A stretch of DNA of 64,000 nt from Guillardia theta CCMP2712 (GCF_000315625.1 NW_005434464.1:6181-70180), one strand, 5' to 3'. Counted from the stretch's first letter, positions 13,540 to 59,210 are shown. The notes: generated by a model from the sequence alone, not told the origin. Numbers and translations are program-made.

Positions 13540-16500
13540 TTTTAAAAAAACTTTTACTCAAAGTTAAGTTAAAGATCAGTACGAGGACAATCAGGAGAGT
13601 CGAGGAGGCTTGACCCTGACACTGTCGCACAGGCCAAACGGCGAGAAGAGAAAAGACAGCGAGAACCAAACCTAAACCTGCCGACTGCTGTCCCCCAAAC
13701 TTAACTGATACCTTCACTTAACGGCGCGCAGGACAAGTCCCCGCGCGGCCATGCCAGCGATGTCGCGGTGGCCGCCGCCGAAGGAATGAGACGCATACCG
13801 GGATGCACCCGCGATGATGGCAGCGTAGGACAGGGAGGCCTTGAGCTGACGGAAGACCCTGGACCGAATGCGTTTGCAAGTCGGATCACCTGAGACGTCT
13901 TGCGAGGCCGAGAGACCATCCAGCGCTGCCGTTTCCTTGTTCGCCGAGCGATCCGCCAGCCACCACAGAAAGCGCAACGCATCGTCCTGCAAGAGGCCAT
14001 CAGTGCTGGCGATGATGGGAAGAAAGGCCTTTGGCGGGACGTGCTGAGCATATGCATTACGATGCCCTCGGATCTTCCGCTGTGCTGCCGCTTGCAGTTT
14101 GCTCCGAGCGAGGTCCGGTATTCCATCATTGTCAAAAACATGTGACATGCTGAAGTCCAGGATTAACCCATGCCATCCGCCGCCAGTAGCCATCAGTTGT
14201 GGAAGTTCAAAGTCCCCTACATGATGATCTTCAGGGCCATGTTCAAGAAACGTTCTGCCTGGTGCCGGGTACGCCTTGCACGTGGACGCGGCATCTCACT
14301 CCGGAATCTTTGATGAGGGTACTGAGGACGGCATTGCACTTCTCATGCGCATCAGTCCATAACTGGCTGCGGTGCCTGCAGGTTGCCATGTGTGTGGTCC
14401 CCCCAGGATGACGAAGAAGATGATGGCATCGATCGCAGTGCGGCGGGAGGTCAACCGGCAATCCATGAAGAAACTTGTCAGCGGCAGCCACCAAGCTGAT
14501 GGGCTGCTGCTCAAAGATCCCAAGGTTTGTACTTTCCATAGTCGAGTGCCAAATCGTGCGCTGAGGGGTAAACTGAGACAGAAGTTCATCAACCGGGTGG
14601 CCTGGTACTCGAAGGGGAGTAGAGAAGCTGGAGTGGTGTGCCAACAAAGATCTCTGGCGCTCTGAAAGGTGAGCCCGAATACTGCGGAACCGGGGAAACT
14701 CCGAGAGGAACTGAGCCGTGAGCTCCCGCTGGGCGGGCCGATGAAAAGCGCACTGCCCGACGTCCCAAATAATTCAGGCGAGGGGATCCAGCCATTGTCG
14801 CACGCCTGAGGAAGCTCCGCCAAGGAGGTGTACGCCGAGATGCCCTGCTCCATCAAGTGCCTGTGAGTGTCCAAGAAGGCAGCAAGCATGGGGACAACAT
14901 CCCCAGCGTCCGCTTGCTGCGGTTGGCGGATTCGAAGCTCAGTGTCAGAATTGATCCGGTGGAAGAGTGGCGGTGTAGGGAAAGTCCAATGCTGGAAGAT
15001 GGCAATTTCACCCGCCCATTTGAGAAACTTGGCAGTCGCCGACCAGAATGCGGTGTAGGCCACGCCCTCCTGCGGGGTGAACCCATCTCCTCCAGCACTA
15101 TAAGGCAACTGACGTTTGAAGTAGGCGAACTGAAGGTCAGATGGAGGGGTGCCAGGGGCAGGTTGCAGGACAGATGAACCCTCCTGTGCCTGGTTCTGTG
15201 GCCACTGAAACACCTTCGCCAGGAGACGGAGATTCGCGACGTCAAAGCACTTGCACTGGGCAGCGGTCAAGGCCGGGGAGATTCCACGCAAGAAATATTG
15301 GAGGGTGGGAACGTGGGTCGTTTTCAAGAGCTGCTTGAGACCCAACGCAATGGGAAATTGTTCCAACTGGGTCAATTCAGCATTGAGGGCATTCACCTTG
15401 GCAGTGATAAACTCTTGCTGGAAGGACTGAGATCCTATCGGGATACCTCCCAGGATGATCCCCTGGCCGCGGAAGGCAAACTGCTGCAAGCCCGGGTACC
15501 TACTGCAAATATGCTCTTGGATGGCTTGTTGCTGACTAGATTGAAGTTCACACCAGGACGAGGAGAATATCTGCGAATCCCTGGGTTGAATCTCCAATCC
15601 TAGCTCTTGTTTTAAAGTATCAACCAGCGATGCAGTAGCCTGTGCGGCAACTGAGAGCTTTCCAATAACAGCCATGTTATCCGCATAGGCCGGGAAGACA
15701 CAGTCGGGAAAGGTCTCTGCGACTTTGACCAGGGAAGGGAAGGTGGTGTGCGCAAAGAGAGCCATCGCCAAGGGGTCCCCCTGAGAAACTCCCGTGGTGG
15801 CCGAAAAAGCCCGAGTCTCTCGCTGATGTTTCAGAAATAACTTACCTGCCTGGCCATAATATTGATGAACATACGGAAGGACTCCTTGGGAAAAGTTCTC
15901 ACAACGATGCTCGGGAGCAAGGAGGATGTCAAATAGCCGTTGGCGAGAGATCTCATTGAAGGCATTTCTTGCGTCGATCATGATGATTACCGTGGGATCA
16001 AAATTATCAGACTCACCTTCGCCCTGGTCTGTGAATGGGTTGGCAAAAGAATGGGGTCCTAACAGGCATTCGATGGTCTTGCAGAATTTGAGACAACCTT
16101 CCTCCAGACCCACGCAAAATTGCAGGACCCGAGAGTGACTGAGGGTGAAGTGGCTCTCCAAAGATTTTCGGTAGAAACGACAGAAGATGCTAGACACAAT
16201 CCTTCGCTCCAGGTCCCCTATCACAATAGGTCGGATTCCGCTCTTTTCCACTGACTTGGCAGCAGGAATGAATCGCCCCCCTCTGGTGTATTCCTCGAGG
16301 AAAGCGCCCGAAGGGATTCCCAGCGCGATCGGCTTCAATATGAGGTTAATGTATCGCTGTTTGTGATCATCATGCAGTCTGAGAATGTGTCGCAGGTGCT
16401 GGAACGGTCGCCAACCAAATTGATCAGGGGCCGAGGAAGCAGTGAATCGCCGCAGGAATTTCCCTACCTCTCGCTGATCTAAAATCTTGTCAAGCAATGA

Positions 16501-17990
16501 GGCCGGTTCATCGGCGATGGCATCGTCGAGCTGAGCACTTAGCATTTGCCTTGAGGAGCCGACTGCGTCTAGGAGCGTTGGAGGAATGGGTTCCAGTCTC
16601 GTCGGAAATTTCTCACGAGTTTGCTGCCATAGCTGCTCAAATGGATCTGGGGAGAGGCCATGGCCCACAAGCGCCTGTCGAGCTTTCTTCATATCCCGAT
16701 TTTGGTAATGCTCAACAGCCGAGAGGATTTTCTTTTTCTCCAACTGCTCGCTCTCCATCACTGGCTGCTGCACGCCCGCTCTCGCACGGTCAGGTCCTTG
16801 TGGGCGACCTGCATTTTGACGGTTAGGTTGTTGGCGCCTACCTTGCGGTGCCCGCGGTCTCGTGCCTCGTCCCGACCCAGTTAGTCCCGCCGTGGGCTGC
16901 TGCGTGACATCCTGCGGATCTCCACCGCTGCCAACCGCTGGGCCGTCTTGGTCAAAAGAAACACCCTCTTCTAGTTTCAGCAATGTCTCCCAACGCCCTT
17001 GGAGGAAATGGTGGATACGGTAGCTCACATCTCGGTTTTGTCGCGAGATTGCAAGAACTGGATTCACTCTCAGCAGGAGCAGTGGGAGACAATGCCACAA
17101 GCTCCGGATAATCTTAGCTTCCTCGCAATGCAAGTCAGGGTAACCTTGTAGCAGGTCTAACGTAAACTGTAGCGCACTCTTCCATTTATCAATCGTCTGG
17201 CGATTGGGGTGTTTGATGGTTGTAATGGAAGGATTACGAGCCAGGAGTGCCGGAAGCTTATGTGGTCCCTGTTGAGCAAAGAGAGGGAGGGCTCTGTGCC
17301 AATTCGACGTACCACAAGGCATGTCTTGCGGACGCAGATTATGAAAGTAAGCCGCTGCGCTAGATTGCGTGCCAGGGTCTTCTGGGAAAAGATTTGCCGG
17401 TTGAGGAGGGGGCGGTGGGGGTGTAGGATTGACCGTAGGCTGATCGGTGGGTGTCCTCTGGGAGATGGATCGGCGAAATCTTGCCTGCTTCCGAGGTCTT
17501 TGGTTCCCCGAACCTCCTCCAGATCCGGGCAGCGGCGGAGGAGGCAAAGTCATCCTGCGGACTCTCAGTGAGACGCTGCAGAACGAGATTGCCCTTCCAG
17601 CATGTCAGGAGTCCGTAGGGGTTCCTGCTGTGAGCGGGGCTCAGAGTCAGAGGAGCTCTCTTGGGACACAAGGCCTGTATGAGGAAAGTGGGACGACGAG
17701 CCCGGCGTGCCAGTCAGTAGAGGATCAACAACAGAACTGTGATGACGGAGGATGGCAGGCCGCTTGTGCCGCGCCATGATGTCTCACAGTGATGATGGAA
17801 GTGAGAGCGGATCTTCACGCTTCCCTTGTCGCGGTTCCCTCGCTCTCGCCGTCACTGCCCACCGAAATGAAAGTGGCGAGTAGGCGCATTTCCCCTCAGT
17901 ACACGCCATTTCAAAAAGCCACTGGCATGACGGCCGTGACTGCGTCCCATTTGCATGCACTTAATTGTAATGAAACGTGAGGAGACAACT
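13540..17990 (-). mobile_element. Non-LTR retrotransposon of the RLE class, CRE/SLACS-like; near full length but frameshifted
   Basis: RT motifs SAPDQFGW, GIRPIVIGDLERR, IDARNAFNEISRQ, GVSQGDPLAMALF, YADN, ILGGIPIGS. Downstream CCHC knuckle (CDRC..H..TC) and restriction-like endonuclease region (HVGDFE...ILDFSMSH...RK...Y...FLPIIASTDG). 3' end marked by a T7A7 tract near 13537-13550. Boundaries approximate. Confidence 0.85.
13714..17553 (-). pseudogene. RT-zinc knuckle-RLE polyprotein with two compensating frameshifts (about 14730 and about 14245)
   Basis: The family-like sequence QRELTAQF..LSERQRSLL..LHGLPV..CDRC..H..TC lies in the frame of ORF 14243-14647, while the RT (14296-17553) and endonuclease (13714-14193) ORFs share another frame. 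Confidence 0.75.
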
Positions 17991-18050
17991 TTTTGCGAAT
18001 AAATCATAATTTTTATCTGTTTTGCGAATAAATCATTATTTTTATCTGTT
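17991..18050. repeat. About 29-30 bp tandem duplication at the left edge of the AT-rich island
   Basis: TTTGCGAATAAATCATWATTTTTATCTGT occurs twice in tandem. Confidence 0.85.
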
Positions 18051-18684
18051 TTTATAAATCAATTTATAATTTCAATGATTTTTATATTCAATCAAAAAAT
18101 CTGTTCATTGCTCTTTATTTTCCTTACCAAATCCCTATCATATTTTATTCAATTGAAATAATAGCTGCGCATTGGTGCGGATTATCACACAAAATAACCA
18201 AAAACAAACGAGCGCACCCACGGAGTGGGCCAGAGCCAAAACATAATATTAATTAAAATTATGAATCCTTCAAGGATCATATAAGTAATAAAAAAACCAA
18301 TGTGGGGTGAAACCGCAAAATATTAAACACGTTGTTTTTGCGAACCCCCCTAAGTAACAAAATAATCTATCCCCGCCGCCACCCTCCGCCCCCTCCGCCT
18401 CTACCCCCCGCCTATTTCACATAACGGCTTAATTTTTCTTTTCTTTTTTTTTTCCGCTCTATTACATGCTTAATTTATTTGGCGGGGGGGACGGGGGGGA
18501 AAACTCCATTTTTCCATAGCTATATATATATGCCCACATGCCGGATGGTCTAAATATATTTATCCTCAAAATCACGATTTTACCCCCCGCCCCCCCCGCC
18601 TTACGTCTATTTACCCTACGTTTACCATTCTTTCACACTCCACCACATCCAAAACATGGGGGGAGGGACCCACCCGCCTACCTC

Positions 18685-18816
18685 NNNNNNNNNNNNNNNN
18701 NNNNNNNNNNNNNNNNNNNNNNNNNNNNNNNNNNNNNNNNNNNNNNNNNNNNNNNNNNNNNNNNNNNNNNNNNNNNNNNNNNNNNNNNNNNNNNNNNNNN
18801 NNNNNNNNNNNNNNNN
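18685..18816. other. Assembly gap (N run)
   Basis: Run of Ns; the upstream homopolymer-rich sequence looks like a low-quality read end. Confidence 0.99.
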
Positions 18817-18825
18817 TTATTATAA

Positions 18826-21800
18826 ATGTCTTGTGACAATAGATATCAAAATTTATATCAGTATGTCGGCACTACTAATAACACAACTCTCACGCCTATT
18901 TTTAATAAAATAAATTCAAATATCAATGTCTTGTATAGCAATGTAGATATCCTTAATCATCAGACATCCGAACTATTTCAGAAGACTAATGATCTAGAAA
19001 TTATCACCATTGAAACAAGTAATAACTTGATAGAAACTAATGATTTACTACTTATTACTAGTAATAATTTAATTGAAACAAGCAATATATTATTTAACAC
19101 ATCAAATTTTGTTCTAGATCTGCAATCTCTTATCAAATATAATGCTGATACCAATGAAACCATTATAACAAACAACAATAAAAATATATTATATGTCAAA
19201 TATCAGACTAACCCTAATAAATATATCATTAAATTCACACTTGAAAACGGCTCGTTTATTACAATTCAACAGATTAAACAACAATTAGATGATTTAAACA
19301 ACAATGCTGCCGCGCAAGAAACCGCAAATGCTGCCCAATCCTTAGAAGATTTGGACGATACGGCTGAAAATGGTTTTAATTTATTCAATGGGTTGGGCGA
19401 AATTGTTAAGGGGGGTCTTGCAATTGGAACGGGCTTCATTGGGGGATTGATAGCGTCAGGAACAAGCACATCAAAAGCCGACGGTTTATTTATTCTCTCG
19501 TGGATTAATGTTTTAAGATTATCATTAGGTGTTGTTATTTCTGTTCTTGAAGATGAGGTTATAAATACTAAATTACAAGGTAGAGTCATTAAAATATATT
19601 CTAGGAATCTCACAGATGGTCACAAGCTTGATTTAGTCCCTAATCAGGCATTTATATATGACGACACTTATAAAACGCTTGTTATTGATGGACAAGAACA
19701 AACAGTTTTAGACGAAAGAAATATTGTTTTTCAAGGTGAAGAAGTTATAACATTAGGCAATGAATTAACACAAGATGAATTAAATGAATTTGTATTTGGT
19801 AGCAATTATGCACTGCAAACATTAAAGCAATATAAAACAATATTCAAAGGTAAAACTCTTTTTATTGATGATATTGTTGTCCCTAATATCTATGACAAAA
19901 ATGAGATAGATGATATAATTGATAATACATCGAACATATTATATAATCACATATACGATGAGTCAAATGTACTATTTGATCATATATTGACTGAGTCCAA
20001 TATACTATTCAACAAAATATATGAAGAATCAAATGTATTATATAATCACATAAGAACAAAACATACAGCTAGCACACTCATAAACGATATCAGCCCTAAC
20101 TTTATAGGCAATCTTTATTTCAATGACAATCAAGAATGGGAAATATCAAGAGATTTTTACACAAAACAGCAGGGATTAGATACATTTCTATCATATCAAA
20201 ATCTGGCAAGCTCAAACTTCCTAAAAACGGATGTCTATGCAAATTATCTCAATAGCTCTAATTTCCTAAAAACTGATGCCTACACAAATTTTATCAATAG
20301 CTCAAATTATGTCAATCAAACCCAAATGGCAAATCAATTTGCTCTAATTGGCGAATCATTCACAACAAAAAAGCTTACTGTTACGGGTCCTGATAGTCTA
20401 TATATAGCCGATATCTTCCTTAAATTACAGGGAAATCAATTGATACCACCAAATCTTATTAAAAATCAATTGAATGATACATACACAGTCACTTATGATA
20501 ATTGGGACTTTTGGAGTGGTGGTTCTCCCTATGAAACAGTGCCAACATATCCAGCACAAGATAGGGAATGGGTAAGGTATTCTTTCGCTAATAGAACAAC
20601 TGCCATCCCAGACAATTTTTATATCGAATGTTTTGACATTAGTTTTACGAATAAATTCTCTATCTATTTTTATTATCAATTTATACCTAGTACAAATTTT
20701 ATGAACCGCAAATATTACAGCGGCAAATACAATCTTTTCAATTACTATTTAGGTGGTTTAACGACCGAGAATATACCTAATAATAGAGGGTTTATTTGTT
20801 ATCTAGATTATCAAATAACACAAGATGGCTCGCTAAATATTACCAACATATCTCTTGATTTAGTGTTTGAGATATTTTATAAGAATAATAACAACGTTTT
20901 GAGCTATGAGAAGAAGACCATAAATATAAATGATTTTGCTTATGTTTATCAAAATATTGGAGGTCCTGTTTTTAGTGTTCAAAATAGTCGCATCGCTGAA
21001 CTAAATTTTTATTGCTTTGTTCTACGTGAAGATGGAACCATATTTTATACAATACGCAATCAATTTGAATTGAAGATTGAGGGGACAACGCAAATAACAA
21101 ATTTTAAAGAGTTATATAATGTCAATGATAATAATCATTTTAGAATAATAGACCACGAGCAAGGGCCAACAGGTCAAGAGGCTATAAATTATTCTAATAA
21201 ACTTGATTTAATAGCAATAAGCAAATCTATATCTTGGACACTTGAGACCATAAATCTATTTTGGACTGAGAACAAGTATTCTGATGCTATCAATCAGATA
21301 TTTAACAACGATTTATCGGCAAAGATTAGCGGTAAATTAGAGGTTGATTTTATAGATATTAAAAGGGGTAATCTTAGCGTTATAGATTTGAGCACGCAAA
21401 CGGTTGTAGCTCAAAACATGTCTGTGCAAAATGTTGATATATCAACAGTTGCCACAAGCCTTATCACAAGTGGTGGAGTTGGTAGGAGGAGTTTATCTCT
21501 AGGAGGAACAACGGCAGTCACAAAGGTGACTGATATATATGATGACCAAAATAGAACCGGAATTGTTAAGATAGCATATGATAATACAACACAACAAAAC
21601 ATATCAACAATAGAAAATTTTCAATTAAACTTTACAAATACAAAAGACGGGAATGTTTCAATTACATTAGATAATTATAATGATGTTAACATTGCCTTGC
21701 CTGATGGTATAGCAGGGCCACAAGGCGCAACAGGACCGCAAGGAGCAACAGGACCGCAACTTGACTGAGGAGCAACAGGACCACAAGGCGCAACAGGACC

Positions 21801-23637
21801 GCAAGGAGCAACAGGACCGCAAGGAGCAACAGGACCACAAGGAGCAACAGGACCACAAGGAGCAACAGGACCACAAGGAGCAACAGGACCACAAGGCGCA
21901 ACAGGACCACAAGGCGCAACAGGGCCCCAAGGCGCAATAGGACCCCAAGGCGCAACAGGAGCACAAGGACCAGCAGGCACAAACTGCCCTGAGATTGTCT
22001 TTTTAGATAGTCAAAATAATGAGCTTTTAAGATTTGGCGATTCAATCGTTTCAACTCAAAGCGTTATATTGCCTAGCACAGGCGTAGAATCATATAACTT
22101 TGACCCTGCGCAATTCATAGTCAATCAAACAAATGATGTGTCAATATATGACCACATTCAAATAGAGACATATAATCAAACAAATACAGCTTTATATTTA
22201 ACGTTATCAAATAGAACTGTATCAATTAATTTCCAAGATAAGTTCTATGATAATGTTATAATAAATACCGATGCTTATAATTTTCAATATTCTAGCAGTG
22301 GTACTAGTTATTTAAACCCTAGTATCGAATATACTGGTCCAATTCCTGATATAGCTTGGTACAAATTTGATGATTCTTTGGCTGATACTTTATCCCTAAA
22401 ACCTGATGTACAAATAGCTTATGGCGGTCATTCATTTGCGTCTCATACAGTAAAAACAAATAAAAAAAGTCTCTCTCTCGATACTATTAATATTGATGGG
22501 TTGGCATATACAAAATGGAATAATGGATATGCTAATTATGGCAATGACCCTATTAATTCTGTTGGTGTAGCGATTAACATTTCTAATTCTTGGAATAATT
22601 CAGAGGACAGATTTGCTGTTGAATATATAGGATATTTTTATACAAATGATTTGTCTGGTGTGTTCACATTTTATACGAACAGTGATGATGAAAGCTATCT
22701 TTGGGTCACTGTAGGAGATACAGAAACATTAGTCGTTAATAATGGTGGAACTCATGGCACACAAGAGCGGTCAGGAACTATCTTTTTAGAAAGAGCATAT
22801 CAATATCATCGAATAAGAATAAGATTCAGTGAAAACACTGGAGGGAGTTCATTGACTGTGTCTTTCTCACATCCATTCAAGACAAAGACAACTGTAGGTT
22901 TAGGTTTTTATTACAATGTTTTAAATACAATTGTAAAATTGCCATCAATAGATTATAATGGTTTTTTTACGTGTTCTTTTTGGTTGTATATCAAAAGCTA
23001 TGATGCTTATAACGGTAATACTATCATCGATTTAAACAGTGGTATAAATATAAATAGTGGTGGGGCTTATGGTATCAGAATATATATAATTTCAGGACAA
23101 ATAGCCGTAGAAGTTAATTATTCGACATCTGCTGTATCATATTTTTACTATAATTTAAATAGGTGGGACCATTACACAATAACAATTGGAGGCGCTGGTA
23201 TCATTTTATATCAAAATGGAATTCCTTTTCAAACAAATATACCAACATCATATTTACAAAGTATGACTTGGTATAAATCTTTACTTGGAAACATCTATCC
23301 ATCAAAGGGTAATTTTCAAAGTTTGCAATCGTACTATCAAGATTTAAGATTTTTTAATAGAGAATTGACTCAGAATGAAGTAAGAGATATAATTGGATAT
23401 AATGGTGTTGGTTCATTGAGCGTTAAAGAGACAATTCTTCCATATACTAATGCCGAGATTGAAAATAAGATTGATAACAAGATAGATAATATTGTTATTC
23501 CAACAGGTTATTCAGATATAAACACAGCAGCCTACCTTGATTCTATAAACAATGCTTTGATAAGTGACATTCCGACATCATTTGATTATGATACTCAAAT
23601 AACTGGAAAGCCTGATTTATTTGTCGGAAGATACTGA
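18826..23637 (+). pseudogene. Virus-like fibre/adhesin protein, about 1600 codons (TSN repeats, collagen GXY, LamG, PA14), interrupted by one in-frame TGA at 21766-21768 and probably 3'-truncated
   Basis: ORFs 18826-21768 and 22069-23637 are in the same frame and the interval reads open as (GATGPQ)n then [14 protein letters not shown]14: [36 protein letters not shown]. LamG: [41 protein letters not shown]. Confidence 0.75.
21706..21978 (+). repeat. Collagen-coding 18-bp minisatellite (GGA/C GCA ACA GGA CCA/G CAA)
   Basis: Tandem GATGPQ units seen directly. Confidence 0.92.
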
Positions 23638-23672
23638 CATTCAATACTATTGAATGTCAGTATCTTCCGACA
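23622..23672. repeat. Perfect palindrome, 25-bp arms with a 1-nt centre
   Basis: TGTCGGAAGATACTGACATTCAATA-C-TATTGAATGTCAGTATCTTCCGACA. Confidence 0.97.
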
Positions 23673-23942
23673 CTGTGCAACTTCCATGTTGGCAGTGACA
23701 CTCGGACGGCGCCGCGGGCGTGACTCATGATCGGACGCCGCCGGCGCCGGGCCTCGGAAGGGTGGCCTGAGCCACCAGATACCGTACGCCGATATCGCTC
23801 ATCATCTCACCCCATCCTCGTCCTGGCACGTCTCCGTTGACTGACGCTTTTGTAACGGGGTAGTCAGTTGATACCTTTGCTCTGTCTCTTGCGCATCATT
23901 TTTTTGCGGACAGTCCTTTTGAGAGACTCCCGAAACAACTTT

Positions 23943-25450
23943 TTACAAGAGTTTTTCTTGCTTTGTTTGCGTGCGCATGTTTTGTTTGTTTTGCTGCACT
24001 GGGCCGTGCCAGACGCGGGAGGAAAGTGGGGTATGAGGGCATTCCGAGAGATTCGGATTTAAACAATCATTCGTAGCAGTGCCACGAAGAACTGAAAGCT
24101 CTTCTAGCAGATACCTTTCACAATCCTGTCTCAAGCAGCACCTCTGCTTAGTTTGCCGCAGCCTTGTCTCGTCGCGTTTGACCTTCCTGGCAGTTTCAAC
24201 AGATGTTCCGAGTTCTCAGTACGGGCTTGAAGGATCACAGAGACCTGCCGAGCGTGACAGAGAATAAAACTCATCATTCGGAGTCATCTTTCCATGTAGT
24301 GACTTCAGCAGCCGTGCGGTATTCTCAAGCCCAAATATCGAGCAGGTTCGCAAACACTGTAGCGACCAGACCTGAAGCAGTGGTCGTAGTGCGTACGTGG
24401 AGGTTTTCTTCTTCGAGTCAGCAGCTTTGCCAGTATATCCCCTTCTCCGCCGAGCCACCTGAGACAGCAAGAAGTTGACTGCTTCCGAATCCTCACTTGA
24501 AACCTCCAAGTCGTGAAGCTGCAGTGACACCCCGTCAGCTCATTGTATAGCCGTGCTACTCGTCCGTGGTCGCTTTCACATCGGGTCTTTCAGCTTTGAT
24601 TGCATCCTTTCGACGCACTCGGCTGGCATGCTGACTAAGACGAAGAGCGTTCGCTAATCTGCCATCAGCGTAAGAGACGAGGAGGAATCGGACGATTTCA
24701 TACTCAGCTTTCTGTATCGCTCTCTCCGCTTTATCCATAATCTGATTGCTGTAACTTGTATCAGCAATGTCTTATCAGATCCATTTCACTCCCACACTCA
24801 CGGAGTCTCTTTTGCTGTGTGCTGCCGCATAGCTCGGATCCACATGTTTGCATCCCCACTGCTCTTTGCCTGCTATGCAGTCATTGGTCTACCTTCACAT
24901 CCTTCGAGAATGACCTGCATGATATAATGCCGTCCAGAAGCTGTTCGCACTTGGAAAGAACTACAACAAGTATCATGAGCAGTGCAGGACAACAGGGAGC
25001 ATGTGGTTGTTACTTCGATTGTTCTGTGTTCCTCCATCTCGCACCATCCGACACCACCTGCGAGCAACGTCATCTGCAGCCTCGCGAGCGCCACCATACA
25101 GCTTCCTCCAGGTGGATCGACTGGCCGGGCTTGGGGGAATCAGGGGACTCAAAGAGCCACAATCTGTCCTCCTTCAGGACGCACCATCTCCTCATGCCGG
25201 ACCCGTCAGGCATCTCCCGCACAAGCAAGTATCCTCGAGACTGTCCAAGACCGACCTGAAGACACCACGGCATGTCAGGAGAGATCAGGTCCTTCCTTTA
25301 TGCTTCCATGCTGCTCAACTCGGACAAAAGCTCGTCAGTACCTGAGTCAGAGTGAGCGCCGGACCAGCATCATTGTGATGCCGCTTCAGAAGCTCTCTGG
25401 ACTCTCCTCCCGATCCGAAGAGTTGCATGCTTGCCAGAACTACAGCGGGA
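23943..25450 (-). CDS. PH-domain-containing protein (multi-exon, structure unresolved)
   Basis: Exon RGYLLVREMPDGSGMRRWCVLKEDRLWLFESPDSPKPGQSIHL matches PH beta1-beta4 pattern; helical coding-like fragments downstream. Confidence 0.45.
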
Positions 25451-47281: not shown

Positions 47282-50209
47282 CATGTCGCAGAAGATGCTG
47301 GAAATTCAGACTCGATGGGCACTGAGTAGTCTGGAGAAGACTTGAAGCAGGTTCAGACTTGCGCACACGGCAAGAGGCAGCAGGGCAATGACGTGGGGGC
47401 TCGAGACCAACTCTCCTCCTTCTCGCAGGCACAGGGGCCTCCAGGGGTCGTGAACCTCAAGGAAGTTATGAAGGCGATGAGCAACGACAGGAACGACGTG
47501 ACGGCATGTCAGGATGCGTTACATGAGCTCTGCAGACTAGCAAAGATGCCGATCAACGTGAAGGCGATCCGAAGCGAGGGAGGGACCCACGCAGTGCTGG
47601 AGGTGACGCTTGCGCATGATGACTCGGAGATACTAGGAGGAGGGCTCGCGCTTCTCAACACCATCGGGTGGGACAAGCAGCAGCGAGCAACAGACAAGGT
47701 CAAGGCAGTGCTGGGTGCCATGCAGAAGCACAGGAATGATGTGAAGATACAGAGAGCAGGCCTCGAGGCCTTGTGGCAGTTGCTGGGGCCGTCGGAGAGG
47801 AATGTACGTAAAGAGCAGAGATTGCACTGGAGACTCGAGACATGGCTGGATCATGTATTGCACCATACAGGGTCGTGGAGATTGCGGAGAGCAGAAGCAG
47901 AGCTGCTTGAAAAGATCGTGAGAGATGACGAGATACGGAAGGAGATTGGTGCTACAGCAGGGGCAAAGACTGTAGTCGAGGCCATGATGGAACACAAGAA
48001 CGATGCAATCGTGCAGCGATGTGGGACAGAGGTTCTGGGAAGGATCTCACAAGAGGATCAAGGGTGGAAGCTCTACTGAGCTCTACTGAGCTGCCTCGCG
48101 ACGAAGGCGAGAAACCGAGCAGAGGGAGGAGTAGAGGCGTTGTTTGGAGCCATGCGCGAGTATATAGGAGAGGTGAAGGTGCAGAAAGCCGCGTTGACGT
48201 TGTTTGAACGGCTTTCACTCGACGAATCCGGATTGTTTGGGCGTACGATAAGACTAGCAGGCGAAGTTGAAGCAACTCTTGAAGCCATGAAGGAACACGT
48301 GGATTCACTAGATGTACAGCAAAGTGGACTGAAGATACTCGAATGTTTCTCTAAGGATGAGGACGGGCTGAGAGAAATCTTGAGCGCGGGAGGCGCCAAG
48401 ATCTTGACCTCGTCCTTGCAAGCGATGGAAAAGGACGATGAGTGGATGCGGGCAACAAGAGTGAAGCTGCTCGACACCTTGTCGCTGCATGAGGAGGGGC
48501 TAAGACAGATGCGGGCAAACGAGCTGATAAAGGTGGTTGAAAGCCGTAACTGCCATTTGAAAGGTGATTCGTATGAGCAAATATTCTTGATTCTTTGCCG
48601 TCTTGCTTCATACAAGTCACTCTCGACAGGAATTCCAGAGATGATCTTGAAAGCCATGCGGACCCACAAGAACTGCGCAATGGTGCAGCGATTAGGCCTT
48701 GGAATGCTCTATAAAAATTCAGCATCCCTTGAGATGAAGAAGAAAATCTTTGAAGCAGGAGGATTAGAGGTGGTGATGAAAGCCCTTCGAAGGTTCGCTA
48801 CCTTGAATGTGCAATTCATTGGGATTCGTGTGCTCAGTGAAATACTTGAGTTGAAGGAGGCGCAGAACAAGTTCATGGCAGCTGGAGGGATCGAAGCTGT
48901 GCTGAAGTCAGTGAGAGAGAGATGGAACTTATATTATAGTCTTGTCTTACTCTTGAGGCTCGTGCAAGATCAGGAGGGGCGAAGAAAGTTCCACGAAGCA
49001 GGAGGGAGGGAGGTGGTTATATCAAGCATGAGTGACGACGAAGAGCGAAACGCCTTGGTCATCCTTAGCTGCGTGGCGACTCGGAAGAAAAATCGACCTC
49101 AGGGAGCGTGCAAGAAGGTGTGCGAGAGGTTCTTTATGTCGCCTCATAAAACCGACGGGTATACCGGGGCTCAGATTGTTCAAATCGTGCTAGGAGCCAT
49201 GCGAGAGCATCGAAGAAACGGGCGAGTGCAGTTAGCAGGGCTCAGGTTCCTTGGACATGAGCTGCATATTAACAAGAGTTGGGTGGCGGTGATCAGGCAA
49301 GCAAAGCTGAGTGTGATGCGAGTAATGCGAGAGCACAAATGCAATCTTGATGTACAGAAGGAAAGTATGGGCATTCTAGTGAAGCTCTCAGAGGGTGCGA
49401 AGAAAGAGGAGGAGGAGGAGAAGGATGACCACGACGACGACAAGGAGGAGGAGAAGGAGGAGGAGGAGGAGGAGGAGGACTCCAAGAAGGAGGAGGAGGA
49501 GGAGGACAAGGAGGAGGAGGAGGAGGAGGAGGAGGAGGAGGAGGAGGAGGAGGAGGAGGAGGAGGAGGAGGAGGAGGAGGAGGAGGAGGAGGAGGAGGAG
49601 GAGGAGGAGGAGGGGCAGACAAATAATAGGGCACAAGAAGAGATCGAGATGGCTTTGGCGCTATTGAAGACTGAGGACCTGGTGCTGCCGATCCGGGCCT
49701 TTGAGCTCTTGACAAACATTGCAACGGACGAGGAGGGGAGGAGGGAGATCAAGGCGGCTGGCGGAGTCGAGGCGGTGCTGTCAACTCTGACGGCAGGTCC
49801 GACCGTTAAGATTTTAGCGAGTTGTATCCTACTTCTCGCTGCCCTCGCGACAGACGAGAAGAATCGTCCAAGGAAAGGAAGACAAGCACAGCAGCTGATG
49901 AAAGCCGCAGCTGCAGTGATGCTGGAGTATCGAGACGACCCCAATGTGCAGGAGGCAGCGCTAACCCTGATCTACCGAAAATATGGGGATGAAATGTTCG
50001 GCATAGGGATTGAGGCAGACACAATCCCTGCAGTCGTTGCGACTTTGAAGAGGTTCCCCGTAGCTACCGACATGCCCCACCATCCTCTTGAACTCTCCAT
50101 CCCTCGCAAGCAGCTCGCGAGGACTCCCGTACTCGACGACCTGCTGGCACGTTTCAGATTCCCAAGGAATGGGAGAGAAGGAACGGGCCTGCCCCTTGTT
50201 CAGGACTAG
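47282..50209 (+). pseudogene. Armadillo-repeat protein with poly-Glu tract, interrupted by an in-frame TGA at 48077-48079
   Basis: Repeated GG.E.V..AM..H.....VQ..G...L..L units in ORFs 47342-48079 and 48140-50209, which share a frame. Confidence 0.65.
49405..49612. repeat. (GAG)n tract encoding poly-Glu
   Basis: Seen directly. Confidence 0.95.
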
Positions 50210-55650: not shown

Positions 55651-57950
55651 ATGCGCAGCTTCAGCAATGCCGAGTACGAGGAGGCGAAGCGGCGGGTGAG
55701 GCGACAAACACAAGGCCCTCCTCCTACCAGCCATGCAGGAGCTCTTGATAGAGCCGGTACCAGCTTCGAGCCTCGCTCCTCTCCTCCTTCCTTGCTGTTC
55801 TCTTTGGTACCACCATCGGTTACGAACACCTCATCTGCCATCCTTTCCTCGTCCTCCTCCTCATCATCTTCTCCGCCCTTGAATGCTTCTTCGCCTTATT
55901 ACCTTTTCTTCTTCTTGACCTTCTCGAATCCTCACGTCGCGGCTGCCTGCCCTTACCTCGCCCTGTCCCAACTTCACTCCCTCGTCTGCTGTCGCAGTTT
56001 CTTCCTCCCGTGGTTCTGCTCTGCCTGAAAAGGTTTCAGGGACGCCCAAGGCAGAGCTGTATGATTTTGTGTTGGTGCTGCAAGCTCAAGTGAAGGTAGA
56101 GAGGAGACTTTGTTCTGACTTCATTCGTAACCATCAACCACAGGAGCTTCATGAAAACATCATGACAAGACTTTCGTCTCATACTCAGACTCAATCCTTG
56201 TTCAATGTATCTTTCTTCTGCACTGCTTCCCCTCACGATAACAAGCTGCTGACAGGCTGACTTCAAAGAGATTCAACTCCACATTGACAGGCTGATCATC
56301 AACCAGCAAACACAGCAGGAGAAGCATGTAGAGATCTCTTGCATGACGAGCTCAACTCATGAGTGTCTGATTTCAGGAGCGGGAGATTTCAAAGTTGGAA
56401 GCAGAAAAGCAGAGCATTCTCGATGGTTTTATCTGAAGAAAGTTCTGCCGCTAGTGTGATGAGCTCTCAGATCTGAAACGTGAACATGTTGAAAACTTGA
56501 AGACTATGCAACTTGGGCACATGAAGCAAGTCCAGGTGCTGAGGGTGTGCGATTTTTTGGTTTCTTTGAGAGAAAAGTGCAGGATATGCTGGAAAAGGAA
56601 GAGGAGGAAAGGAAGCAGTGGGAAGAAAAGCTGCGCGGTGAGAAGGAGTCGTCGCAAGAAAACTTGATCGAGTTAGAGAAGCGGTTGCGAGCGATTCATG
56701 AGAACGAGATGGACGATATGGAGCAGAGGCACGAGCAACGACTGGAAGATGTAGGTGCGTTGTAACATGGCGGTCTGATGACGAGAATGTATCAGTTGAA
56801 GGAAAAGCTGCTGAAGGAGCATGAGGAGGACAAGCAGGTGATGGTTGGTTGCTCAGCCTCCTTGTGCTCATGCCGTCCGTACTAGAATGCTCTGAAAAGA
56901 CTCGAAGTTGAACTTGAACAAGACTTTGAAGCTCGATTGGAAGCAAACAGAAGGTTTGGATGTAGAACTTGATCTCTCACTCTCCAATAGTTCAATCTTC
57001 ATACAATTGCTGCGGCGGATTGTTGCTCTTTGCCTTCAAAGATGCTCATTTTTGACTTGAGCTTCAGCAAACTCGAGGAGGAGCATCAGAAGAAGTTGAT
57101 GCATCTGCGATCAGAACTCAGCCAGGCCATGAAGGAGCTCAACGACGCCAAGTATGCTTCGTGCATGACAAGTGCCGTAATGTGGCATGACCACTGGCTC
57201 AGGTCAAGGCTAACGCAGGAAGTCAACTCAAGAGCCCAACAGATGGCGGAGGATGAAGTTAGGATGGAGAAGCCGCGTTGGTTGCAACCTGATCCTCTCG
57301 CAGATCAACCGGCTCAATGACGAGCACAACTCCTTCCTCGTCTCCCACAGACGGTTCAGCCGCCTTGAGGTCGGCTGCTTGCATGTCAACCCCCCCCCTA
57401 CCCTTCCGTGCTGATGCAACACAACAGAGAAAGGAGATCAAAGAGCTCGTGAACAAAGTGGACGCCCACCAGCTCCAGCTCGACGTCGTGTGCGAGAGAG
57501 TGCGGGTATTCTACTCCATGTCTTCCTCCATTTCCGTCATCCTCACACTCTCAGGATATGGTGGGAAGGCACAGTCAGCAAGTTTCGACCATCAAGGTGA
57601 TGGTGGAACAGTTGAGTGTAGCAGAGAGTGAGGGCGGGAAGCAGGACGAGTCTCGGCGACTGATGGAGGGGGTCAAGCAAGCTTATCTAGAAGAGCTGCG
57701 CATGTTCAACCAACGCATGCGGCAAGTGATGGAGGCCAAGGAGACCAAGGAGGTGAGTGGGAGGAGAAGGGAGGAGAGAAATAGGGGAGCGGAGGGGAGC
57801 GGAGGGGAGCGGAGGGGAGCAGCTGACCTGGAGGTTTAGAAGCGACTGCGAGGGCAGCTCAACGACTACAAGCAGCGGCTGCACGAGACAGAGACGATTC
57901 TAGCGCGGCAATACCGCGAGATGGAGAGTTTCAGTGTCGAATTGCTATGA
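55651..57950 (+). CDS. Coiled-coil protein, multi-exon, unknown family
   Basis: Successive E/K/Q-rich heptad exons separated by short GT-AG introns. Confidence 0.5.
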
Positions 57951-58165: not shown

Positions 58166-59210
58166 TTATGTGCTCATGGCCAAGGAGATGCCGAAGTGAC
58201 GGTCATCAACGTTGTTGGTGTCAACCTGGAAGCCAGCGTTGAGCACGCTGCCCTTGTCGACCTCACGCTTGTATCCAAGGTTGAGGATGCCGTCGGAGTT
58301 GATCTTGCCCTTGACTGAGGATCCAGCGTCCACCTTGTACGAGGCACCGAGGGCAAACTTGTTGCCGTTGGTGGAGAAGGTTCCGGCCACATCGAGGTCT
58401 GAGTTGATTGACTGGGTGTAGGTTGCCTGCACATCGTCGCCCTTGAGGCCATTGACAACGGCGCTGGCCTTGAAGTTTCCTCCGTTGTAGGTGGCAGCGA
58501 TGGTGGGATCTCCGAGGGTTCCCGCAGAGGAGTCGTAGGTGGCAAACCCTCCAACCTGGACGTCTCCAGCCTGGAACACGGCACCGGCCTCCAAGTTCTT
58601 GCCCTCTACACGAGCGTTGCAGGTGAGGTCTCCCTTGCTGTACTCAGCAGCGACGCTGGGAGCCGGCATGTCCTTGATAGAAGATCCTCCCTTGAGGGAT
58701 CCTCCCAGGGTGAGTTTCACGCCAGAAACGTCGGCCTTAGCCTCTCCCTTGATAGTGCCAGATCCATCAAGATTTGCCTCGATGTCAACACCCTGGTAGC
58801 TGGTGGTGGCCTTGAAGGTGCTTGAGATCTTGTCAGCAGCGTTCCTGAGGAAGGTAGTCTTGAGGCCGATTCCTCCATTGAGTCCGGACTTGGAAGTGAT
58901 CTCGAGCTTGTTGTCGGTGGAGTAGCCAGAGTCCAAGACGGCTGCGCGTTTTATGTCAGGCAACACGACACACATAGCAAGAGAAAGTGAGAAACATCGC
59001 ATTTCACATGGAGGAGCTGAGGATTTTCGGGGGAGGACATTCAGGACAAACTTCGGAAAGGATCCGCGGACAAAGCTGGGGGACAGATCAAGAGGACCAA
59101 CCTGGAGCCTTGACAAGGTCCTTCCAGACAGGAGGAGCTCCTCCTCGAAGGCGGAGCTGGGATGCGGAGCAAGCGGCGGCGGCGCAGAGGAGGAGGATGG
59201 ATCGGCGCAT
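58166..59210 (-). CDS. VDAC: VDAC-family eukaryotic porin with a 24-aa N-terminal extension; exons 59210-59102 and 58941-58166
   Basis: APPVWKDLVKAP|AVLDSGY matches the VDAC N-terminal helix; beta-strand alternation; C-terminal YKVDAGSSVKGKINSDGILNLGY...HFGISL. Confidence 0.88.

Follow-up and report, generated by a model that had tools for sequence, protein, structure and literature searches.

The window analysed here, a 64,000-nt stretch of nuclear DNA from the cryptophyte alga Guillardia theta CCMP2712, carries on its minus strand a two-exon gene for a porin with an N-terminal extension. Exon 1 (59210-59102, 109 nt) opens with the start codon ATG at 59210-59208 and covers residues 1-36 plus one nucleotide of codon 37. 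A phase-1 intron of 160 nt (58942-59101; GT at 59101, AG at 58942) separates it from exon 2 (58941-58166), which closes with the stop codon TAA at 58168-58166. The two exons form one joined ORF of 294 aa, and the encoded protein agrees at every residue (100% identity) with GUITHDRAFT_166637 (P0001) as annotated for G. theta. The minus-strand translation of exon 1 (59102-59210), MRRSILLLCAAAACSASQLRLRGGAPPVWKDLVKAP, comprises (i) a signal-peptide-like leader, residues 1-18 (59157-59210), (ii) LRLRGG, identical to the C-terminal hexapeptide of ubiquitin, at residues 19-24 (codons 19-24 of the ORF, 59156-59139), and (iii) the start of the VDAC N-terminal segment (APPVWKDLVKAP; 59102-59138), which is homologous to APPx[YF]xDLGK. 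This translation reproduced exactly the exon 1 reading, with LRLRGG at 59156-59139, that had been proposed by a model from the DNA alone (the sequence-only reading). The remaining Porin_3 barrel (19 predicted strands) and a beta-signal-like segment, HFGISLAM, were assigned to exon 2 (58166-58941) from the profile and the structural model described below. Just downstream of the porin gene, within the neighbouring gene region, GCTCCCCTCC occurs four times on the minus strand (57790-57830).

Elsewhere in the window we noticed a low-GC island (18000-24000; GC 0.31-0.36 versus ~0.51 elsewhere) carrying two long intronless ORFs on the plus strand. The first (18826-21768, 980 aa) is rich in N, I and Y, showed no Pfam hit, and ends in a collagen-like GPQGAT repeat that forms a period-18 tandem array at 21713-21977; the second (22069-23637, 522 aa) bears PA14 and Laminin_G_3/concanavalin-like domains. 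The island resembles an AT-rich viral or mobile element that has become integrated. It is adjoined by an uninterrupted minus-strand ORF of 1085 aa (14296-17553) with a reverse-transcriptase domain (RVT_1, E = 4.5e-8), which is probably a retroelement. Two simple repeats, a (CTGCTC)x33 array and a (GAG)x69 array, lie at 1843-2039 and 49406-49613, respectively, and no tRNA or Rfam match was found anywhere in the 64,000-nt window.

The full-length protein matched the Pfam Porin_3 profile (PF01459) over residues 26-285 with 81.1 bits (E = 1.2e-22; cut-off 28.4), and exon 2 alone scored 75.7 bits. VDAC2 and VDAC1 were the closest solved sequences. An AlphaFold2 model, built from an alignment of 12 orthologues, contained 19 strands and an N-terminal helix (residues 27-33) at a mean pLDDT of 74, residues 1-26 being below 50; its best PDB matches in Foldseek were VDAC1/2 (TM 0.73-0.76), ahead of Tom40. 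Mitochondrial beta-signals follow the pattern polar-x-G-x-x-hydrophobic-x-hydrophobic, and the C-terminal strand of the porin, HFGISLAM in G. theta and RKxG[ILV]SL in its relatives, fits this pattern. The claim that the gene encodes a VDAC-type porin was thus borne out by the Porin_3 profile, the 19-strand model and the fold matches to VDAC1/2.

In a word-index search, orthologues were 51-60% identical to the G. theta porin, and leader-bearing ones could be named from Hemiselmis andersenii, Proteomonas sulcata and Rhodomonas salina. An exhaustive profile search returned 510 hits, only six of which fell below 1e-30. Two further groups show the same leader and motif arrangement at ~40-45% identity to clade A, namely clade B (P0062, ...NNLRLRGGFAGY) and clade C (P0237, ...GLMRLRGGVCPGW), both of which are known from short environmental transcripts or contigs only.

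The porin gene could also be compared with a second Guillardia-like genomic contig, L007. Exon 1 differed from L007 by a single substitution in 109 positions and no indels, and exon 2 by 17 substitutions in 776 positions, again with no indels, whereas the intron, the splice sites of which are kept, showed 14 substitutions in 147 positions and one 13-bp indel, and the region upstream of exon 1 showed 30 in 253 with two gap columns. Furthermore, in-frame stops lie just 5' of the leader ATG in two orthologous transcripts. Given this exon-specific constraint and these upstream stops, we conclude from the comparison that exon 1 is genuine coding sequence under constraint. L007 (ENA ERZ930064, a metagenome contig of 2491 nt) and L008 represent a second Guillardia-like allele or species of the porin gene; the L007-type environmental copy is ~95% identical to the window over the 1.4 kb compared, and the porin gene on the environmental contig had been annotated as a 'prokaryotic' ORF, truncated to 269 aa, with the intron read through.

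The leader (residues 1-18; MRR / SILLLCAAAAC / SASQ) consists of a basic n-region, an uncharged hydrophobic core and a c-region of small residues, and we judged its signal-peptide character heuristically from hydropathy and this layout. The best 9-residue Kyte-Doolittle hydropathy was 2.84 for the G. theta leader and 2.39-3.52 for 17 leader-bearing relatives, versus -0.31 to 1.90 for the N-termini of 105 canonical VDACs, so that on this heuristic the leader is signal-peptide-like, as had been claimed. Across the leader-bearing N-termini the uncharged core is 10-13 residues long. Judged by eye, every sequence has Q, A, S, G, N or T directly after the likely signal-peptidase site (+1), and none has an aromatic residue there, the hallmark of the stromal class; a non-aromatic +1 is consistent with the periplastid class or with plain secretion, but not with import into the stroma. 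The signal peptide and the mature VDAC N-terminus are 7-16 residues apart, and this segment is net positive with no acidic residue. An N-terminus at, or just after, the predicted signal-peptidase site would be, for example, QLRLRGGAPPVWK. In the Rhodomonas-salina-like cluster, two assemblies of one gene (P0060 and P0013) have ...TTPAGSLRLRGG in common and are completely different upstream of it, one starting with a hydrophobic leader and the other with an Arg/Trp-rich, non-hydrophobic stretch, which suggests that an intron within the leader was retained in one assembly or that an alternative 5' exon is used.

In the N-terminal alignment, G24 of the porin shares its column with the initiator Met of canonical VDACs (M-APPx[YF]xDLGK). 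The family rule of an M-A-P-P start with no cleavable presequence does not hold here, as 24 residues precede the canonical Met position. In this register, cutting behind GG would yield a protein that starts APPVWKDL..., in agreement with the canonical APPx[YF]xDLGK, and the alignment thereby confirms that the tail motif abuts the point at which ordinary VDACs begin. In the alignment of 12 orthologues (51-58% identity), L21, R22, G23, G24 and P26 do not vary, in contrast to the leader. We collected 25 distinct N-termini from clades A, B and C, which share only 40-60% identity, and L-R-G-G is retained in 24 of them, the exception being one environmental read with LRRG; the consensus across relatives is [LM]-[RG]-L-R-G-G. 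Counted back from the GG, P1 is G in all 25 and P2 in 24 (R in the remaining one), P3 is R, P4 is L, P5 is R in 23 and G in two, and P6 is L in 17 and M in eight, with Leu in G. theta; directly after the motif (P1'), G, A, F and V are seen, but no Pro. The residues shortly before the motif in these N-termini include no Lys, Asp or Glu. Neither the length nor the sequence of the linker that joins leader and motif is constant, whereas the motif always stands at the same distance from the VDAC helix. Five species encode the motif with synonymously different codons, indicating that selection acts on the peptide, and LRGG is present in none of the 105 canonical VDACs. Judging from these alignments, the conservation of the motif is not due to chance. 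Loss of the motif from orthologues, which the sequence-only reading had named as evidence against itself, was looked for, and the orthologues retain LRGG. Met at P6 (MRLRGG) is seen in P0005, P0008, P0010, P0030, P0237 and others, eight of the 25 altogether. Internal initiation at this Met would yield a leaderless protein bearing the six-residue tail only, and dual targeting might come about in this way.

Leaderless VDACs of ordinary length were found in Chroomonas CCMP1168 (P0068 and P0254), Hemiselmis (P0257 and P0076), Baffinella frigidus (P0259) and the plastid-lacking Goniomonas avonlea (P0205). Within Hemiselmis, the leader-bearing type comes from H. andersenii and the canonical type from H. 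virescens and another Hemiselmis. As cryptophytes possess such leaderless paralogues, the leader-bearing porin appears to be an extra, differently addressed copy. For G. theta itself, no leaderless VDAC was returned by a word-index search with a Chroomonas VDAC as the query, which does not imply absence, or by a profile of 11 cryptophyte and Goniomonas VDACs run against the best 8000 candidates by shared words. The sequence-only reading had suggested looking for a second, leaderless VDAC in the genome; leaderless VDACs exist in Chroomonas, Hemiselmis, Baffinella and Goniomonas, and the word-index searches gave none from Guillardia.

In the maximum-likelihood tree, clade A was monophyletic (97/83), as were clades A, B and C together (100/98), and a quick tree agreed with this result. 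All leader-bearing porins were on the same side of an unstarred branch (94/68), and the leader-bearing porins plus the cryptophyte canonical VDACs were split from 50 other VDACs by a starred branch (95/84). The Goniomonas VDAC fell elsewhere, outside this group. The tree topology leads us to favour a duplication inside the cryptophyte lineage. Since Goniomonas does not join the group and the tree holds no labelled red-algal sequences, this origin is proposed tentatively, and so is any choice between a red-algal and a host source. A second, more divergent Porin_3 family with signal-peptide-like leaders, clade D, comprises P0077 (Baffinella frigidus KAJ1480892.1) and the environmental sequences P0116 and P0240. 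Its members carry a longer, proline-rich presequence without RLRGG, P0077 and P0116 score above the Porin_3 threshold, and the family is most closely related to the RLRGG porins (~30% identity). Several porins may therefore be routed via the ER in cryptophytes, and clade D indicates that a porin does not need the motif to be routed in this way.

At the sequence level, the porin thus consists of a signal-peptide-like leader, a variable linker, the invariant [LM]RLRGG, and a normal VDAC N-terminal helix and barrel, in this order. As the layout of leader and LRLRGG is conserved across cryptophytes, the pore has probably been re-routed to the four-membrane plastid, and the motif would serve as a maturation or sorting signal. 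Retargeting to the ER, towards the complex plastid, is plausible, and cleavage at the GG by a protease that recognises a ubiquitin tail is attractive; a location at the periplastid compartment or plastid envelope, with DUB-like cleavage after GG, is what we infer from the layout. The reading we prefer, which we hold tentatively and somewhat short of an even chance, is that a mitochondrial-type VDAC paralogue specific to cryptophytes was given an ER-type address, travels via SELMA to the plastid outer envelope, and is trimmed after GG. The signal peptide would direct co-translational entry of the precursor into the chloroplast ER lumen. The remnant left after signal-peptide removal, being positive and having no aromatic first residue, would behave as a periplastid-class targeting peptide and cross the periplastid membrane via the ubiquitin-dependent SELMA. 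In the periplastid compartment, a protease acting on ubiquitin or ubiquitin-like tails would cut after GG to release APPVWKDL..., equivalent to the canonical VDAC N-terminus after Met removal. With an N-terminus of the canonical type the helix could dock in the pore, and Omp85-family machinery would place the barrel in the third membrane, which is the outer envelope of the plastid, to act there as a general solute pore.

The preferred reading has to be set against several observations. Transit-peptide-like regions are usually at least 20 residues long, net positive, poor in acidic residues and normally highly variable, and the transit-like stretch of the porin, at 7-16 residues, is far below such lengths. 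Most deubiquitinases need the ubiquitin fold, and no such fold precedes the tail here: we found no ubiquitin-like peptide in any frame of the window and no ubiquitin Pfam hit in the protein. The window thus holds no ubiquitin-like coding sequence, and the porin is not a mis-spliced ubiquitin fusion. In addition, clade D porins carry signal-peptide-like leaders without RLRGG, and a canonical VDAC of G. theta was not found in the word-index searches. As for the machinery, SELMA is ubiquitin-dependent (PMC5756292), and the PPC of G. theta contains a 26S proteasome (PMC6559170). ptDUP, a diatom enzyme and the only characterised PPC deubiquitinase, is reported to be absent from Cryptophyta, which also counts against the preferred reading, and an alternative enzyme has been postulated (PMC12412216). 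Cryptophytes do conserve a nucleomorph-encoded putative deubiquitinating enzyme, the role of which is unknown according to its authors (PMC6559170). It is possible, if rather doubtful, that the bare ubiquitin tail works as a stand-alone maturation signal, with trimming at RLRGG by a periplastid protease specific for ubiquitin or a Ubl, after ubiquitin-dependent import across the periplastid membrane, freeing an outer-envelope pore of the VDAC type. If that is the case, the candidate for the trimming enzyme is this nucleomorph-encoded protein (Gt2_270 in PMC6559170), which has zinc-finger and Ufm1-peptidase domains and is present in all cryptophytes.

Alternatively, the porin may reach the complex plastid via the ER with RLRGG as a minimal transit-peptide-like core, which is not cleaved and is kept in the mature protein. 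Proteins need positive charge and N-terminal lysines to be imported across the periplastid membrane. The two Arg could supply the charge for SELMA import, or else a SELMA factor or a ubiquitin-binding factor could read the motif as a tail mimic; the segment behind the leader is net positive and devoid of acidic residues, and K30 and K34 follow closely behind the motif. The lack of a ubiquitin fold to recruit an ordinary DUB, together with the lack of ptDUP in cryptophytes (PMC12412216), agrees with this idea as well. Nevertheless, a need for charge leaves unexplained the Leu at P4, the G-G pair (24 of 25 at P2, 25 of 25 at P1) and the restriction of P6 to L or M, and likewise the exclusion of Pro from P1' and the exact register with canonical VDACs, and the invariance of the motif contrasts with the high variability that is normal for transit-peptide-like sequences. 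We consider retention of an uncleaved RLRGG unlikely.

A porin of the secretory or endomembrane system (ER, plasma membrane or a cryptophyte-specific organelle), unrelated to the plastid and with RLRGG processed or read in the lumen, would account for the plain-looking signal peptide and for the mature protein following almost directly after it. However, we know of no machinery that inserts beta-barrels from the ER lumen, and the beta-signal-like C-terminal segment points to insertion of the Omp85/Sam50 type. All named carrier species, moreover, are plastid-bearing cryptophytes, and the plastid-lacking Goniomonas gave a canonical VDAC only, which does not prove that the leader-bearing type is absent there. 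An endomembrane porin, for which mouse pl-VDAC-1 offers a precedent (PMC2234005), is in our judgement quite improbable.

Less probable again is a mitochondrial or dually targeted VDAC, in which chains that escape SRP, or that are initiated at the P6 Met, would be trimmed after GG by cytosolic deubiquitinases. A cut at GG would indeed regenerate the canonical VDAC N-terminus, Met occupies P6 in eight of the 25 N-termini, and the beta-signal-like segment is intact; that no separate canonical VDAC of G. theta turned up in the word-index searches gives a mitochondrial or dual role some scope. On the other hand, P6 is Leu in the remaining 17 N-termini, that of G. theta among them, a strongly hydrophobic N-terminal leader normally commits the chain to the ER, and other cryptophytes possess ordinary leaderless VDACs, so that such a route is not needed. 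An artefact, be it a mis-annotated first exon or a chance hexapeptide, can be dismissed as barely credible: a single LRGG per 64-kb six-frame translation is expected by chance (the window has four, with a mean of 3.65 in shuffles), but the motif is kept across 25 N-termini and three clades, complete transcripts have upstream stops, and the constraint on exon 1 is exon-specific.

Several other candidates were rejected. A hidden upstream ubiquitin exon, which would make the gene a true ubiquitin-VDAC fusion, is contradicted by the lack of any ubiquitin-like peptide in the window and by orthologous transcripts that begin with the hydrophobic leader. Bacterial double-glycine leaders, the substrates of C39 peptidases, have GG at -2/-1, hydrophobic residues at -4, -7, -12 and -15, and an acidic residue near -8. 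The porin has the GG and L at -4, but P or N at -7, A, N or G at -8 and no acidic residue, and its leader is a hydrophobic signal peptide rather than an amphipathic one. Inspection by eye also disfavoured twin-arginine, furin/Kex2 and RxLR/PEXEL signals, since the motif stands after the hydrophobic core, has no dibasic pair and matches neither RxLR nor RxLxE.

In the openly searchable literature, we found no description of the GUITHDRAFT_166637 protein or its locus tag, earlier mention elsewhere being possible, and no report that cryptophytes direct a VDAC or porin to the plastid or that algae with complex plastids use an LRGG-type signal. The combination of leader, ubiquitin tail and porin is real and conserved, and apparently undescribed. 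Metabolite passage across the outer membranes of four-membrane plastids is largely unexplained. The outer-envelope channels of land plants, OEP21, OEP24, OEP37 and OEP40, have no sequence homologues outside the green lineage, the red lineage included (bioRxiv 10.1101/2025.06.18.660430). A conserved VDAC paralogue with an ER-type address is a concrete candidate for an outer-envelope pore and, if trimming at the bare tail does free it for that membrane, the first molecular candidate for the outer-envelope pore of a red-lineage complex plastid. The position of the invariant tail, exactly at the mature N-terminus, suggests that ubiquitin-based SELMA import and precursor maturation are linked, and the motif, if portable, would make a compact processing tag.

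Comparisons with known systems place the porin as follows. It belongs to the same family (PF01459) as canonical mitochondrial VDACs by profile, shares with them the modelled 19-strand barrel and N-terminal helix, and retains in G. theta both the APPx[WYF]xxL N-terminal segment and the C-terminal beta-signal-like segment. Unlike canonical VDACs, which start with Met-Ala-Pro and have no presequence, it bears a 24-residue extension made of leader and RLRGG, and the leader-bearing porins form a separate, cryptophyte-restricted clade beside the ordinary cryptophyte VDACs. As in the bipartite signals of red complex plastids, a signal peptide is followed by a positive, acid-free segment with a non-aromatic first residue; in those signals, however, the transit-peptide-like part is long and poorly conserved, whereas here it is extremely short and includes an invariant motif. 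Efficient cleavage by deubiquitinases needs a residue other than Pro after GG. In the porin, as in ubiquitin-fusion precursors (polyubiquitin, Ub-L40 and Ub-S27a), LRLRGG stands directly before the functional protein and is never followed by Pro, but in place of the 70-residue beta-grasp body of those fusions there is a signal peptide, and only the six-residue tail is present.

Plant Toc75 has a bipartite transit peptide with a polyglycine stretch, which acts in envelope sorting and is cut by type I signal peptidase. The cryptophyte porin would resemble it as a beta-barrel of the plastid outer membrane with a glycine-based N-terminal sorting element removed outside the stroma, features that are inferred for the porin. 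The element of Toc75 is a run of many glycines without an LRLR context, and Toc75 belongs to the Omp85 family, in contrast to the VDAC-family porin described here. In mouse, the hydrophobic leader of the proposed plasmalemmal pl-VDAC-1 comes from a separate first exon, and the protein goes to the ER, the Golgi and possibly the plasma membrane (PMC2234005). The cryptophyte porin likewise has a hydrophobic N-terminal leader from a separate 5' exon, which in the mouse protein diverts a VDAC into the secretory pathway (PMC2234005) and may do so here. Nevertheless, pl-VDAC-1 arises from an alternative first exon of a mitochondrial gene in one mammal, and has been questioned, whereas the cryptophyte porin is a dedicated paralogue found across an algal phylum and carries a ubiquitin-tail motif, which is not reported for pl-VDAC-1. 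None of the systems compared here joins a signal peptide to a bare ubiquitin tail.
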